DNA of 64,000 bases from assembly GCA_964270895.1 (NCBI GenBank), contig OZ185437.1. The stretch is one strand, 5' to 3'. Both the position numbers and the translations under genes were made by a program. Below, piece by piece: positions 4,204 through 62,649 of the stretch. The notes under the pieces are model-generated. The model had not been told where the DNA came from. It saw nothing but the letters and a program-made list of their open reading frames with translations, and did not search any database. The DNA is from Podarcis filfolensis. Lineage: Eukaryota. Within the stretch, counting starts at the first letter, position 1, and the number at the start of each line of letters is the position of its first letter.

Positions 4204-4734
4204 AACACATTAAAACATTGAATACAGCAATCCAGAATAAAACATTACTGAAAAAAATCAGATATAAAGTATACCCTCAAAGCGACATAATTTACAGGAA
4301 ACTAAAATATTATCTTAAAGATTTCAAAATGAAACATTACAAAGGAGGTAAACTACTGAATGCACACTTAAGTTAAGAAAAGTTAAGAAAAAATATCTTT
4401 AAAACATTTAAAAGGATCCTGGGAACGTTAGTTTGAGGGGCCTGGGAATTGTAGCTCTGAGGGGGAAAGTACACTTCCCATTATTCTTTGGGAGAAGTCA
4501 TGTCCTTTAAATGTGTGTTGTATATGCTTTCAGTGTTTGGTATGGCTCTGCCCTTAGTTGCTTTCGGTGAATAATGAATTACTGAAATATGTCACTCTGA
4601 AAGACTGAATATTTTGTAGTCTCTTACTGCCACCTTATGTGATTTCTTGCCATTGCATATAATGAACTTTATTTCCCCATCCTAGTCAGTTGTTTTTAGG
4701 GTGACCAGATAAGTGACAGGACAGGTCTTCTGTA

Positions 4735-4880
4735 CTGTGGCACAAATGGTCAGTGTCTGGTTGTTAGCCAGAAGGTTGGTGGTTTGAGCCCACCCAGGGA
4801 AGGACGTGGGCTGGACTCCTGCACTGCAGGCAATTGGAGTAGATGACCCTTGGGGTCCCTTTCCATTCTACAATTTAAGA
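4735..4880 (+). mobile_element. Degenerate tRNA-derived SINE with CR1-like tail
   Basis: GGTTTGAGCCC B-box-like motif; tail gatgacccttggggtccctttccattctacaatt, same type as 38776-38929. Confidence 0.65.
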
Positions 4881-7134
4881 GGGAATTACAGCAGCTGCAT
4901 CTTTTCTCAAAACGTACGGCAGTATGACACAATAGATTCTTGTCTTCCAAATTTACAGTGCCCAACTTCTGTCCTCTCTATTCTTCTGGGAGGAGTACAA
5001 GCGCCAGTAGTATACTTTGTCCTTTGTGGACAGTCAGACTCAAAAGTAAATTCAAAGCACATAGACACAGTAAAATCACAGTTGTGGAGCACATTATGCA
5101 CAAGATTCAAAATAAAATGCATCAATATCTGACTATCATGCCACTTCTGAAATCGTTTTCACTGTATAAGGGAAACTGTAAGTGATATTTTTACAGAAAT
5201 TTAAAAGTTTAGTAGACCATAGAAGACTAAGTTTCTATTTGCTCCTAATTCACAAGTTAGCAGGTATGGCATTTGATAAAATCAGTGTTCTTGAGGGGAA
5301 TACCTTTGAAAATAATAAAATTCATTTCAGACTTCAATAATTGACTTAATGCTTTTGTTAAGAAATTGCTAGCATAGTTAACTGGCCTGGCTAAATAAGT
5401 AAACTTGCATATGCAATATTAACTGTTGTTTCAGCATATGCAATCGGTATGTAGGGTTCATCCAGACTGTGATTCCGCCCCCCCCCCCCCAGGTATATTC
5501 TACAAGTTGTTATTGATACAATAATAGTGCGTTAGTGGTGGATTTATTTGGGACTGCAGCACTTAATTCCACTTCATTAGTTCCGATATGCTCTTCCAAT
5601 GCACAATAGCACAAAAAGTGGGACAAAACAAACACCCTGGAATGTTTTTTTTTTGGGGGGGGAAGGGACGAGTTTTAGCAGGAAGATAAAAGACACACTA
5701 ATTACAATGAAGCAGTATGTTTATCTCAAAACTTTTGCATGTGCAAACAGTACTGAAAGCCGGATTGTGTGTAACCACCCCAATAACATCGTGAACACAA
5801 TGCACAATAAAATGATTTATTTGAAAATTATTTATTGAACAATGCACAATAACATAATTTATTTTAATGCACTAACATAAATAAAAAAAATTAAATTACT
5901 GAAACCTTTGGGTACAACCACTTTTTAAATTATATATTTTAAAAAGATTTTTATACTTTGAATTTGTATTTACTAAACTATATAACAATCTGATACATGC
6001 CTTTAGCCTGGGATCTAATGTGTGCAGTGGTAAAAATCACAAATTATTCCCTCTATCTGCAACAACCCTTTCTGGTAAGTATGCCAAGAAGCAAATTTTC
6101 AGCCAAAGGTCTTTTGATAAGAATAAAGTGAAAATAAAATCAATTTTGCTGTTGGCTGTGGTGATTCATAGTAATTAAAGCTGAAAGCACAACAAAGCTT
6201 AGGTCATCAGTATAACAAAGTCAACAAAGCTTCACATTCAGGGCATCTCTGCAATTGCAATCTTGTTATTATTTCCAAACAATCATAAACTAGCTCATTT
6301 TTTCTTTAATATGCTGGTCGCAAACATTCTCAGGCATTTTCTTATCCCCAAAGCAAAATGCAGGTCAGATTTGTATTGATTTTACTGAAATGAACTGAAA
6401 TCTCTTCTTCTTAAACACACTTCAGTGATCACTCTAAATGACAGTGCAATCAAATGAACACTGCACATTGGATAAGCATTCTTCCTGTCTGTCTGTAGCA
6501 TGTGAGTGACTGCTGAATCTGCTACTGGAAGCACCAGAGTCAGGTGTTTTAAATTTGCCCTCAACAGCAAAATCTGGTCATTAATTGAGATGTATATATG
6601 TATTTCTAAATCACCAGACAGCCCAGCTGAATGGAGGTGTTGAAGAAATGGGAGAGATTACTTTCCATTAGCAAAAGCTTCCCAATGCACATGCCCAACA
6701 AAATCATCCTACAGGTCCTACATTCAACTGATGCATAATGCAAGACTGACGTGAGCCCCTCTCTTCCACCACAAACTGATTTGAGGAGAAACTGCGCAAA
6801 CCAGGTTTCTGTGGGTTTAACTAGCAAGGAGAGCTTTATTAGACTGCACTTGTGCTCATTTATTATTATTAATAATAATAATTGCATCTTATATCCATTC
6901 TTCCTCCTGCTGGAGCCGATGCTTACGTTTAGGATCTGCTTGTAAAACCAACTTGAAAATGTGCTTTTTCAAATTGTGTAAAAAAAAGATTCTAACAGAA
7001 GAGTCCTAAACACATCTTTGTAGAAGTCCTCTTGAAGTCAGTGGGATTCACTCTCAGGTAAGTGGGGTTAGGACTAGAGCCTAATTCAGTTCTTTAAGAT
7101 AGGGGTTATGGAATCAAAGAAATGTACACCCAGT

Positions 7135-13917: not shown

Positions 13918-14011
13918 TATGGTGAAAGTTTTTAGACACAACTTGTGTACTTCACACATTTATATTAGTTTAATAACAAAAGCAAAGCAGCTTAGAAAAA
14001 CGAGTTTTCTA

Positions 14012-14017
14012 TTTATT
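14012..14017 (-). terminator. Probable distal polyadenylation signal of PHIP (AATAAA)
   Basis: tttatt on +; U-rich downstream element on -; ATTAAA also at 13969-13974. Confidence 0.55.
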
Positions 14018-17000
14018 TAAAAATAGGTTTGTAGTTACTACATTGCAGTGACAGTAATTCATACACATACATTCTAGTTTGTATAAAAGGATTCCAAGTA
14101 TTATTCATCAAAACCAACGTAAGTGTTTCACATAACAATAAAAGTTTCGATCAATATGTACAAAAAGAAAGGGCACTGTTCATCCAGGTGTGAGACTGCA
14201 CTTTATAACTTGATAAAGCAGAAGAGAAAGAAAATAACCTTGATAAAACCTAAACTTGTAAAACTGTATGTTGGTTACATGAACATTTTTGGGATTTACA
14301 CCATACTGTACAAAGTAAGCAAAGCTTTAAAATGTGTCAGTTTCAAAATTAGATGTTCCAGACAATTTCCTTAAGTTACACTACATTATATGTTTCAACA
14401 TTAAGTGGCAAGATTTAAGGTATTCACTCAATAACTTTCTTTTCAATTTTTGCAGTGTAATGGTCCAAAAATGTAACTTCAAAATGTGTGTCAATAGCCT
14501 ATCCTTTTAAAAACATGCATCTGAGATAAATATACCATGTTAAATGTCTTATGTGAAAGTGTAGAAATTTGGTGCTGTATCTTTAAAGGTGTAGTAATTT
14601 CCAGCACTAATTATATCATGAACAAAAATTTATACCATATCCTGAAGCAATTATCTGCATTTATTTAAAATTCAAATATTCAACATTTGGCTCCCTTTTT
14701 GGTATCAAAAGAAAAATGATTTTTCATATAAATAGCTCCTTAAATTATTTACCCTTTAAAAAAAGGGAGATTTGGGGTTTGGTCTTTAACAGCAAATATT
14801 ATGCTATTTCCATCTTCAAAATGCCATCTCACATCTACGGTACTTTTAACAAAAAATATCCTGAAATAAATGTAACCTTCCTGAAACAGAGGGTACCTTT
14901 TATTCCAAAATGTTGTGAACTAAATGGGAAAATGAGAGCAACAAAATAATTCTTTGCTTCACCATTATTCCAAGAGTAATTATGTAAAGTTAGCACATTT
15001 AAAAAAAAACACAATACCAGATTTTGTTATATTAGAAATAATTTTCAGACTTGGCCACTATATATGAAATGTACACCTTTTTTGAATTATAAACATATGT
15101 ACATTATTTACAGCAGAAACTGAACAGCCCTTTTATCAGATGAATGCTTAGGTCCAAGAACATGAAATGCAAGATTGATACATCAAAATTTACAACAAGG
15201 CTCAATCCAGTCGGTCCCTTACACACACTAGGACACAGCTGTCCCACAAGTGCACCTCTCCAGTTGTGGGAAGTCTGATGGCCGGTGTGGGTGAGATGGA
15301 TGGCAGGAAACTCCTGCATGCCCTGAGGATGCAAGGCACGACTGGATTGTGGCCTTAAGCTTTCATTAAATAGACCACCAGGAGCTCTTGCTTCAAAGCA
15401 AAGGATCCACATTCTTCAGCACAGTAGGATCAGCTCTTTGCAGAAATCAACACACTAAGAGCTGTGTGTATGGAGTTCTGGTTGGGGTCTTAATATCACT
15501 TTAGATGTACTAAAGCTCATGAAACTGAAAGCTCAAATTGGTATTTCACAAAGAGTCGTAACACAGCACATGACTTATGTACTGAAACTATGTCCCCATT
15601 CATTTTTAAACGTTGAGAAGTACTACATGCTTTTGAATCGGTATTTTACAAAGATCAATCCAAACTAAGATAAAGTATTAAACAACACATGGAAAAATTG
15701 ACAGTATGGTACAAATAATTTTGTGCAAGTTTACATCACAGCAGTACTATAGGAAGACGGGTTTTGTAAAGCTGTATCGCTACTCATACCACAATGATAA
15801 AGATCATTTCTTCAGTACCCAGTTATTATAGCAATGTAATTCAAGCTTAATCCCTGGGAAACAATTAAATTTCAAACCCGTTTAGCCAAACAAGGGATTG
15901 ATTACTGGAGTGAAAATGAACTTATTTCCCAATCAAAGAAAATGGAATGTGCTGCTATCAGACATCGCTGTATAGTAACCACTGGTTAATATTGAAGTAA
16001 TTTAATGTTCAGCATTATGGAACTAATGGACCGCTCTGTATCAGAAGCTGTATCAGTAGACTGCATTTTACATTTGTTTTCATTACTGCCAAGTTTGTAA
16101 GATAATTGCTTGTGTGAATATCTGTAATTACCAACAGAAAGAGTGTCTACATAGTATTTTCCATGTAAATGTGCCATAAAATAAATATTACTTTGCTCTC
16201 AATAGTTTTATCCATAACACATTTCATTACGGTTTCCCCCTCCAAAAGTTAGTGAACCAGTATTTATTGCTTATATTAAAATGTGCTAAATCAAAAGCTC
16301 TTCTGTGTTGGTACAATAATTTTTTTGCAAATCAGTCAAATTTAACCAATGACAGTAATTTAAGTCAAACCAATGCAATTTAAAGCACTTATATAGTATA
16401 TCTAGCACAATTACAGTTTTAAGTGTTTCTACACAAATGTATTACCAAAATAATGTTAGAAAAAAATAAGCTTGTGAATTCTTAGTACAAAATTATTCAT
16501 GAATGGGGAACAATACATTTGTGTACTGCAAATAAGACTTGATTCTTTTGTTCTGAAATGTGTAATTTTCAGACACTATGATGGTGATGTGTACTATTCC
16601 ATTCTCCAACGTTACATACACATACTTGATGTATACAAGTATATACATAAATATATGCCAAGTGGGACATAGTTATAAAATGAGTAACTTACAGTAATGG
16701 GGTTTCATGTTTGCTTTGCCAATTTCTTTTATATAACAATGCAGATAACAAAAGGAAATCACACATTTGAAATTGATTGCCTTCATCAACAGTGAAATTC
16801 TTAAATGGGCAAGATAAATCTACTGTAATGCTTCCATTGTGAAATGAACTATCACTGTACATAGGCTGCTGAAATATTTTCATGTTTAATGTCTGCAATA
16901 TTAGTAAGAATGCATGTTTAAAAACATAAGTCAGTGTCCCAAATCCCATAATTATAATACGCTAATGAAAATAGGTATCCAAGAAGGACTAGTGCCAGTA

Positions 17001-17494
17001 GAATTTATTATTCTACTGTAAATCATGATTTGGCAAATACTCTTAGTTGAAGATATTTTCTTAAAAGCCAAACCAATATGGGTTATTTAGAGGAGATGGT
17101 GATGGCAACTAACCAACCAAAACAGAATCTTCCCTGCCTCCAAACATTCAAAACTGGCCTGATCATAACGTTGATTAGTCTACTTCAAATAAAAGTGAAT
17201 TGTGTTGATGTTTATGAGTATTTGCAATAAAATCAGAAATGCATTTTAAGAACCAATTGCCATGGACACAAATGGATAAAAGATGCATATTAATCTTGAA
17301 CCTCAGATGCCATCCACTGCGAGCAACATATGTGCACTAATGAAGTGAGTATCAAGTTGCATACAAAGCTGTGTTGCATACATAGTTCCTGAAGTTGCTT
17401 CCACCTGCAGTCCTCAAACCCGGACTGGAAACTACATATTAACACAGACTGTCAATGTTGCCAAAATGGTAGACACACACAAAACATAAGATAA

Positions 17495-18573
17495 CCTAGC
17501 TGTTTGGAGGGTAAGGATCGGAATATAACCTCCCAGGCTTCCCCTGATGGGGGAAAAATGTTAAAGGGGCTGCTTTATCACCTCTCCAAACAGATTATTG
17601 GCTCTACCATGTTGGCAAAACACAGCTAAACTTCAGGTTACGTGAATATAATACTGGTTTGTGACTATGTAAGTTCTTTTTCAAAAACAATTCAACATGT
17701 AATATACAATATCACAATGTGTAATTCCATAAATCAACAGAACATATTATGATAAATTAAAGTCCAATGGATGGTCAGGAGAGACAGTCCATTCAGTTAT
17801 TAATTTGGCAAACAGGCAATAACCACGATATGGTATGCTTATCTTGTGGTGTTCCACATCTCGCTGCTTTGAGGATTCTAGCGTTCTAGTGTTCCTTACA
17901 TGTAGGTATCAGATGGAAAGCTAGAAAGTATGGCATGACAAGGATTCCGGGATAATACCTTGTTTTGCCCAATGTGGCTTTGTCAGCCGTGCATACTCAT
18001 ATTCTTGTGTGCCGAAAACATGGAACATAATAGGTAGAGTTATAAGTATGCAAGGCTGACGAAGCCAGATTGGGCAAAACAAGGAATTATCCCAGAATCC
18101 TTGTCATGCCATGCTTTCAACCTTTCCATCTGATATCTGCATGTAAGGAACACTAGAACACTAGAATCCTGAAAGCGGTGAGATGTGGAACACCAAAGGA
18201 TAAGCATACCATATCGTGGTTATTGCCTGTTTGCCAAATTTACAACTGAATGGACTGTCTCTCCTGACCATCCACTGGATTTTAATTTATCAGAATATGT
18301 TCTCTTGATTTATGGAATTACACCTTGTGATATTGTGTATTACATGTTGAGTTGTTTTTGAAAAAGAAGTTACATAGTCACAAACAGCCTGATGTTTTGT
18401 GTGTGTTGTTACCAGTATTATATTCACGTAACCGAAGGTTTAGCTGTGTTTTGTCAACATGGTAGAGCCAATAATCTGTTTGGAGAGGTGGAAAAGCAGT
18501 CCCTTTAACATTCCCCCCCACCAGTGGAAGCATGGGAGGTTATATTCAGATCCTTACCATCCAAGCAGCTAGG
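17495..18573. repeat. Long inverted repeat (arms 17495-18001 and 18041-18573, loop 39 nt) in the PHIP 3' UTR
   Basis: Hand alignment of the left arm to the reverse complement of the right arm: ~42 substitutions, one 1-nt gap and one 27-nt indel. Confidence 0.97.
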
Positions 18574-20210
18574 CTGCCGGCACCAATTATCTTTTGAACA
18601 GGTATGTATACATCTGCATCTCTAGATTGAGGCTTACTTCTCCCAAAGGGTGTTAAATGAAAAGTGTGGTTACATTTTTGTACCATGCAACTGTTTAAAG
18701 ATGTATTTTGTTTTCTTTTAAATTGGACTATACTTTCAAACAATAGAAATTGTATTAAAGTTTGTTTTAATACAAACTTTGTTTTAAAGGTATAAAATAA
18801 GTAAATGTACCATAAACAAATAAATAACTGTTTCTTTTTCCATAGCAGTACATACAGCAATACATTCCCCTAAGTCATATAGTCATTTACAATAGACAAC
18901 TTAAGTTTACTAAAGATGCACAAAATAATAGACTACAAGGCACAATCATTAAGTGGGATTTTCCTTTAGGGTGTATATATTGACTTATGTCAGCTTGATA
19001 AGTACACTGTAAAAAGTGCAGAAAAACAATGTGCAATGAGAACACTGTATAAAACATGATTGCATAAAAAGTGATTTGGCCTTTTTATCTTTAATAATTG
19101 AAAATAACCAATCTTCCCCTTAAAATAAAAGTATGACATTTTAAAATTTTATCTAGTATTATCTAAAAAGTCCTGAAAAAAATTATTCCTGGGTAATATT
19201 GTATATATTTATGTGCTTGTGTACATAATATATACATACACAGACACTTTTTAAAATTTTAGTCAGTTTTAACACAATTTGTATAAACAATCAATCTGAT
19301 CGCATCGTAAACATAAGAATCTCACACTTTTCCTGCAGTTTCCTTGAATCCTTTAACCCAATTATACATTTTGCCTAAGGATCCCACCAGTGCATTAATT
19401 GTTTTTACTACAAAGTACCAGTAGAGATAATTTTTCAGAACAGTGTATATTTAGAACATAGATTCATAAGCATAATTGAAAAATGTATGCTGCACTGACA
19501 CTAAAAACTTTTCTACTGCACCGGTTTTCAGTCTTTGGCACAATAAACAGAGATTTGATTGATACGAGAATGAAGGTCTGAAAAATTAGACATATTAGTC
19601 AAACTTTTTCCAATGTGGATATATATATCTACATAGTGTGATTTTTCTCTCTGGCTGAACCTAGATAAACCAACAAGCTGCACTAGGTTTGTTTGTACAA
19701 AGCTGTGTGCCCAATTACTACTGAAATTAAACATCTTATTAGCAATGTTTGGAATTTTGCATTTGTTCTCAATGGCATTTACTGCCACACTCTGCTAATA
19801 TCCTGCAAAACACAGATACTACACTCTATACAAATGTACTGTACCTTGCTCATTCAAAAATAGGAGTTCTGTTCTCAGTCTGTTACATTAAAAATTCTAT
19901 CAATTTTAATCAAATAGAGGTTACTGACTGTCCAAAATTACAGTAACATTTCTGCAAATCAAGAATTTCCATTTATACAATCTTCAATACCAACTGAACA
20001 AAGTGAATTGAAATGTATAACCTACTTGGAGGGCAATAAATAGCAAAAGTTTAAAATACATACTTCTTTCAAAGAAATGTTCAGTTTGTTTTTGCTATAC
20101 TTTTTCCAAATCAGAACGTATTCTCATTTGTAAATAGCAGCAGAAAGCAGATATCCTTAGTTCTACCACTTCCTCAGCTGTACCTGTTTATTAGCATTTT
20201 TAAATGCTGG

Positions 20211-62649
<42,439 letters not shown>

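Follow-up and report, generated by a model that had tools for sequence, protein, structure and literature searches.

A lineage-specific 1.08-kb near-palindrome in the PHIP 3' UTR of Podarcis filfolensis

In mammals, pairs of Alu or other SINE copies in inverted orientation within a 3' UTR (IRAlus; in mouse, CTN-RNA/Slc7a2) are expected to be acted on by ADAR, Staufen and PKR and to be subject to nuclear retention. The duplexes formed by IRAlus are ~300 bp long and arise where two SINEs have inserted independently, each bringing its own tail and duplication, with spacers of hundreds of nucleotides between them. Long duplexes are rare in mature mRNAs, and are thought to be purged for mimicking viral dsRNA (PMC7006430). 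Across 49 organisms, long inverted duplicated sequences are strongly depleted from mRNAs; those that are retained are reported to be weakly expressed or heavily edited, and an extreme class of 'nearly perfect' duplexes, longer than 300 bp and above 96% identity, is almost missing (Barak et al. 2020, PMC7006430). Hyper-edited palindromic repeats include frog Harbinger and lizard Penelope elements (Porath et al. 2017, PMC5625713). In lizard brain, palindromic and inverted repeats are reported to be massively hyper-edited, and unedited transcripts are typically not expressed from hyper-edited regions (PMC5625713). At the DNA level, fold-back (snap-back) inverted duplications occur at DNA breaks (PMC3907307, PMC10622511, PMC11724301).

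The 64-kb window considered here, which is the whole stretch of Podarcis filfolensis contig OZ185437.1 that was analysed, contains a 1.08-kb near-palindrome at 17495–18573, an inverted repeat with a short spacer. The palindrome is moderately unusual. Its best reading, proposed tentatively and at somewhat less than even confidence, is a lineage-specific, neutral fold-back that lies where the 3' UTR of PHIP is permissive. The palindrome is composed of the following parts.

17495–18001: left arm, 507 nt, the 3'-distal arm in PHIP sense orientation (repeat search, blastn, global alignment)
18002–18040: spacer or loop, 39 nt, unique, with no internal complementarity (repeat search, sense-RNA fold)
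18041–18573: right arm, 533 nt, the 5'-proximal arm in PHIP sense orientation (repeat search, blastn, global alignment)
about 18386–18412 (ambiguous by ~2 nt): bulge, 27 extra nt present in the right arm only (global alignment)

The repeat search resolves the arms into three gapless, collinear inverted blocks, pairing 17657–18001 with 18041–18385 (345 nt, 92%), 17550–17658 with 18411–18519 (109 nt, 91%) and 17495–17553 with 18515–18573 (59 nt, 90%). Blastn merges these blocks into a single match of 507 nt versus 533 nt with 42 mismatches and 28 gap columns. In the global alignment of the arms, 466 positions match and 39 do not; there are also three gaps of 1 nt, and the right arm has one piece of 27 nt that the left arm lacks. 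Over ungapped columns the arms are 92.3% identical, and their three longest perfect runs measure 42, 36 and 31 nt. The first-pass annotation of this DNA had given ~91–92% identity, ~42 substitutions, a 27-nt bulge, a 39-nt loop and perfect runs of up to 42 nt, and all of these numbers are correct. Its gap count stands for the 27-nt bulge, but the single 1-nt gap that it listed becomes three in the global alignment. The outer ends of both arms are sharp and coincide exactly, and extension of the palindrome into the flanks is not significant (score 9, against a shuffle mean of 8.4). No further copy of either arm is present in the 64-kb window, where the best other blastn match is 19 nt, consistent with the earlier statement that the arms are like no other repeat there. 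The palindrome is also the sole long, closely spaced inverted repeat that the repeat search finds in the window.

Folding of the PHIP-sense (minus-strand) RNA predicts a single long continuous hairpin at −785 kcal/mol. Self-comparison and RNA folding, the two checks first proposed for this locus, both return the palindrome at 17495–18573, and it is confirmed as a real feature. In the sense RNA the duplex comprises 505 aligned positions, with 466 Watson-Crick and 8 G-U pairs, so that a duplex of ~505 bp is ~92% Watson-Crick paired, or ~94% when G-U pairs are counted. At this length it lies above the ~300 bp that mark a long-dsRNA ADAR substrate in a 3' UTR.

The palindrome is located 1.64–2.72 kb past the PHIP stop codon, internal to the 3' UTR. 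The surrounding region was compared with four genomic contigs of other squamate-like species (L001–L004), which were obtained via their last-exon ORFs. The features of the gene and its UTR that bear on the palindrome are listed below.

20211–20882, minus strand: ORF in the last, C-terminal PHIP coding exon, 223 aa plus stop (BLASTP)
20211–20213, minus strand: PHIP stop codon (ORF translation)
20187–20192, minus strand: proximal AATAAA, 21 nt past the stop codon (motif scan, squamate comparison)
13990–20210, minus strand: predicted full-length PHIP 3' UTR, ~6.2 kb (collinearity with L004)
14012–14017, minus strand: distal AATAAA, conserved, the same in L004
17430–18653: UTR segment that is unalignable in comparison with other squamate loci, comprising the palindrome with ~65 nt and ~80 nt of flank

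The best BLASTP match of the last-exon ORF is the PH-interacting protein of Varanus komodoensis (84% identical), and the last ~70 residues of the PHIP C-terminus are invariant across the aligned sauropsid-like sequences. The same exon carries a pure (TGT)16 at 20619–20667 on the minus strand, which reads as (ACA)n in the sense orientation and codes for 16 threonines. This run has no counterpart in six other aligned PHIP C-termini, where 0–2 residues are present, and the tract is a lineage-specific expansion of a coding microsatellite. A dispersed repeat is found in the PHIP introns, with three direct copies at 40645–40746, 55070–55171 and 57140–57241 (62–75% identity) and a 177-nt inverted pair of the same family at 40821–40997 and 60749–60925 (80%). 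A 36–49-nt piece of it matches an intron of L003 (1150–1198), and it is probably an old interspersed element.

The 3' end of the UTR can be placed by comparison with L004. The distal AATAAA and the next ~20 nt are identical in the window and L004, and all similarity ends after this point (13990). This abrupt end of homology ~20 nt past a shared AATAAA points to a conserved poly(A) site, and thus to a 3' UTR of ~6.2 kb. The conserved site lies 3.5 kb downstream of the palindrome, and therefore the canonical long mRNA should carry the hairpin. The original placement of the palindrome within the PHIP 3' UTR is thus upheld, with the stop codon at 20211–20213 on one side and the conserved distal poly(A) signal at 14017–14012 on the other. 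The further proposal that alternative polyadenylation at the proximal AATAAA switches the element in or out of the mRNA is weak. In the two other squamates compared, this hexamer is kept in L004 and is AACAAA in L003. Apart from it, only ATTAAA variants occur as hexamers from the stop codon to the palindrome.

The downstream region is covered in whole by L004, which aligns in collinear blocks at 20900–18655, 17264–17220, 16822–15746 and 15228–13990, reaching 94.6% identity at the end of the block that terminates at 13990. A weak but significant alignment to L004 is also present at 17429–17364. Homology with L001, L003 and L004 ends at ~18653–18659, ~80 nt before the palindrome, and resumes in L004 at ~17429; between these points the window has 1224 nt and L004 has ~300 nt. 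The palindrome thus lies within the one part of the UTR that cannot be aligned from one squamate to another, and is missing from the UTR of L004. Neither arm, in either orientation, shows similarity above shuffled controls to the L004 gap or to the 450-nt tail of L003, no inverted repeat is found in either of these, and no further arm copies occur in the 32 kb of other squamate loci represented by the four contigs. From its absence in the UTRs of L004 and L003 it follows that the palindrome arose after the Podarcis filfolensis lineage split from those species, and on these alignments the palindrome is shown to be lineage-specific. L003 and L004 are also unlike each other here, which marks the segment as a hypervariable part of the UTR. 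The first reading had proposed a fold-back of unique UTR sequence. That ancestry finds no support in these alignments, where no arm resembles orthologous squamate sequence; the segment is too diverged in L003 and L004.

Two further observations concern the UTR outside the palindrome. In a different gap of the alignment, L004 has ~800 extra nt (its positions 4580–5908) where the window has 518 nt (15746 to 15228), so that variable segments of this UTR tolerate large indels in several lineages. In addition, a 24-nt palindrome (92%) is present at 18757–18780, within the conserved UTR block at 18655–19025.

The differences between the arms provide a record of how the palindrome has evolved since its formation. 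The 39 differences in the global alignment consist of 22 transitions and 17 transversions, 7 of them in CpG context, from which a K2P distance of ~0.082 is obtained. Mismatches are spread evenly along the arms. Transitions that keep a G-U pair number 8 of 22 in the PHIP-sense RNA and 14 in the antisense, and there is thus no sign that pairing has been preserved in the mRNA. Likewise, the longest identical tract is 42 nt, so that there is no sign of recent arm-to-arm conversion. The substitution pattern between the arms is shown by these counts to be neutral-looking. G-U-preserving change and arm-to-arm gene conversion were both raised when the palindrome was first described; the alignment shows no bias towards the first and no sign of the second in recent time. 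The accompanying suggestion of selection for a dosage control likewise finds no support in the even, neutral-looking differences, the position in the least conserved UTR segment and the G-U counts in the sense strand.

The persistence of the palindrome to ~8% arm divergence had itself been taken as a hint of selection. The instability of DNA palindromes drops with longer spacers and with more arm divergence; in a reviewed example, inverted Alus stalled eukaryotic forks when 12 bp apart, but not when the spacer was 52 bp (PMC7999016). A 39-nt spacer combined with 8% divergence suffices, and persistence needs no selection. The palindrome is read as a tolerated passenger that is apparently drifting neutrally, with no evidence of a selected function in its sequence.

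A single-locus fold-back, giving rise to a lineage-specific quasi-palindrome, is the favoured origin, although we put it at a little below an even chance. The palindrome would have arisen once, in the poorly constrained middle segment of the otherwise conserved ~6.2-kb PHIP 3' UTR, most likely as an inverted duplication made at a DNA break by fold-back (snap-back or template switch). Such a mechanism would leave a short unique spacer and no target-site duplication, and the anatomy is of this kind, with a unique spacer of 39 nt and no target-site duplication. The arms would then have diverged neutrally to ~8% with no arm-to-arm conversion. On this basis we infer both the fold-back origin and the single-copy status of the palindrome.

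The main alternative is that the palindrome derives from a mobile element, either as a head-to-head fold-back insertion of a 5'-truncated, non-coding retroelement tail (Penelope-like) or as a non-autonomous DNA transposon whose terminal inverted repeats are very long. This is a substantial possibility, although we hold it to be doubtful. Several features are as expected of an insertion. First, the outer arm ends are sharp and exactly coincident, and the flanks do not extend the repeat. Second, in other squamates the orthologous UTR has nothing that corresponds to the arms. Third, Penelope is a massively edited element of a lizard (PMC5625713). Fourth, the left flank is weakly like an internal piece of the right arm (p ~0.03), as might result from a nested insertion into an older copy. 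In this last case the left flank together with the first 12 nt of the left arm (17466–17506) resembles the reverse complement of 18381–18414, the region that holds the 27-nt bulge. The likeness consists of a shared CA-rich 15-mer, TGGTA and GCTGTTTG, and the reverse complement of the bulge alone is weakly like the left flank at 17466–17491. It is marginal, with a blastn E of ~0.1 and with 16 of 500 dinucleotide shuffles scoring as high, and it might go back either to serial template switching or to an older, nested copy.

Several hallmarks of such an element are, however, missing. No target-site duplication of 2, 3, 4 or 8 bp, at offsets of 0–3, is present at the palindrome ends, where the left flank ends in ...AAGATAA and the right flank begins with CTGCC..., CTGCCGGC. 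The arms are complementary to the outer ends, as terminal inverted repeats are, but this is trivially true of any palindrome. The palindrome contains no ORF longer than 58 aa, none of 10 ORFs tested has a Pfam match, and a homologue search with a 104-aa ORF that spans the right junction returned no match; no remnant of a reverse transcriptase or of a GIY-YIG or other endonuclease is recognized. The 58-aa arm ORF has no true homologue among 1.84 billion representatives; its matches there are translated tandem or CRISPR-like repeats only, and were rejected as spurious. A hammerhead core (CUGANGA ... GAAA) is absent from both strands of 17400–18700, and Rfam reports no hammerhead family at E up to 1 and no family above threshold. 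Sub-threshold Rfam models of plant miRNA hairpins over the loop were rejected as generic hairpin matches. ARAGORN found no tRNA-like head, the arms have no B box, and no A-rich or microsatellite tail is present at the arm ends. Exact 25–26-mers from the perfect or best-conserved arm runs have no match in the metagenome and viral collections searched, which is weakly informative. No other copy exists in the 64-kb window or in the 32 kb of other squamate loci. The initial claims of no target-site duplication, no SINE or LINE tail and no second copy within the window are thus sustained, and beyond its trivial inverted termini the palindrome fits no tested defining feature of MITEs, Penelope-like elements or SINE pairs. 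The 'non-transposon' label that was first given with these claims is a tentative one.

Public sequencing runs provide a further line of evidence, in the form of a word share, which is the fraction of sampled 31-mers of a stretch that is present in the contigs of a run. For 16500–19600, the share is 0.94 in runs of the source organism (A) and 0.84 in a separate sample (X3), 0.54–0.61 in six other organisms, and 0.40–0.42 in six RNA runs of organism H. For the palindrome alone it is 0.96 in the source-organism runs X1 and X2, which may be the sample from which the assembly was made, 0.33 in organisms C, D and G, and 0.05 in the RNA of H. By subtraction, and on the assumption that sampling was even, the flanks have shares of ~0.67 in C, D and G and ~0.61 in H. 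Palindrome words are thus less shared than flank words in the relatives C, D and G, as would fit single-copy neutral DNA beside a constrained UTR and unlike what a young family of many copies would show. The share of 0.33 fits equally well with one arm present at flank-like identity or with both arms present at ~3.5% neutral divergence.

The same runs bear on what happens to the palindrome in RNA. If the fold-back reading is followed through to the transcript, the long mRNA would fold the palindrome into a ~505-bp duplex, and promiscuous A-to-I hyper-editing by ADAR, unwinding the duplex, would be expected. The long PHIP mRNA is read as a probable ADAR substrate, and we infer both transcription through the palindrome and its editing. 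The RNA share of 0.40–0.42 in H is more than either flank alone can supply, and so both flanks are represented in the RNA-derived contigs. The palindrome itself is nearly missing from them. Hyper-editing would erase genome-matching 31-mers and fits this share of 0.05; the near-absence also fits lack of the palindrome from the genome of H, or dropout in assembly or reverse transcription. The most far-reaching version of the editing account is that a single-copy, non-transposon hairpin of ~500 bp has for millions of years been part of the mature 3' UTR of a gene that is both essential and dosage-sensitive, and is hyper-edited so fully that sister-species RNA assemblies lose exactly this part. 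We regard this as quite improbable. If true, it would represent a natural, lineage-specific, ADAR-dependent self-dsRNA, a candidate ligand of MDA5 or PKR if unedited, or a modulator of PHIP dosage.

Very unlikely is a selected regulatory module, in which the palindrome controls PHIP dosage via ADAR, Staufen or nuclear retention, or serves as a source of Dicer-processed hairpin siRNA acting on PHIP. That a conserved gene has kept a ~500-bp duplex in its mature UTR while the arms diverged to ~8%, and that just the palindrome part is lost from the RNA contigs of the relative H, would be in keeping with such a role. Throughout Metazoa, mRNAs are strongly depleted of long duplexes, so that a retained one is unusual (PMC7006430); however, the strong reported depletion concerns duplexes above 96% identity, and the PHIP duplex is at 92%. 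The alignment also argues against selection, with no pairing-preserving bias in the G-U changes and with mismatches that build up evenly, as in neutral DNA. The element sits in the least conserved segment of the UTR and is missing from the other squamates compared, and both its 39-nt spacer and the divergence of its arms already make the DNA less unstable (PMC7999016). Moreover, the only target of an siRNA made from a UTR-specific insert would be the insert.

That the palindrome is an artefact of the assembly, such as might come from a chimeric long read that folds back, is extremely improbable. Palindromes are a known artefact of some long-read libraries, and the runs with the highest share, X1 and X2, may be the assembly's own sample, but artefactual fold-backs give near-identical arms where here there are 39 substitutions and a 27-nt indel. 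The X1 and X2 contigs contain both arms and the junctions, as their palindrome share indicates, the independent sample X3 contains more of the 3.1-kb stretch than the 0.65 that would be possible if the palindrome words were absent, and one third of the palindrome words are present in the three other species C, D and G.

The significance of the locus depends on its copy number. If single-copy, the palindrome would be a well-defined example of a 500-bp duplex in a conserved and broadly important gene, and ADAR hyper-editing and dsRNA sensing could be studied on it, as a clean and natural substrate, outside mammals; it would also be a germline fold-back duplication with a date. If it is instead another mobile-element fold-back, it would be ordinary; the consequences for dsRNA and ADAR would be the same, and the novelty of a non-transposon origin would be gone.

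Comparison with the described systems places the PHIP palindrome beside several of them; in the transcript it would behave as do the long 3' UTR inverted-repeat duplexes that ADAR edits and that dsRNA-binding proteins sense. Like IRAlus, it is a long, imperfect intramolecular duplex in the 3' UTR of a protein-coding mRNA; unlike IRAlus, it has 505-bp arms, a 39-nt spacer and no SINE features, and looks like the product of one event. It resembles the inverted duplications surveyed by Barak et al. 2020 (PMC7006430) in exceeding 300 bp and in its presumed place inside a mature transcript, but at 92% its duplex differs from their 'nearly perfect' class and belongs to a less strongly depleted one. 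As with frog Harbinger and lizard Penelope (PMC5625713), its self-complementarity allows it to form dsRNA alone in a transcript; those are multi-copy families, whereas no sign of belonging to a family is seen here, with no hammerhead, coding remnant or target-site duplication found. With fold-back duplications (PMC3907307, PMC10622511, PMC11724301) it shares inverted arms, a short unique spacer and the lack of a target-site duplication. Described fold-backs are either templated insertions of 5–34 bp or large chromosomal duplications, and the PHIP palindrome, as a putative fold-back of 0.5 kb that became fixed in the germline within a UTR, would represent an event of intermediate scale.
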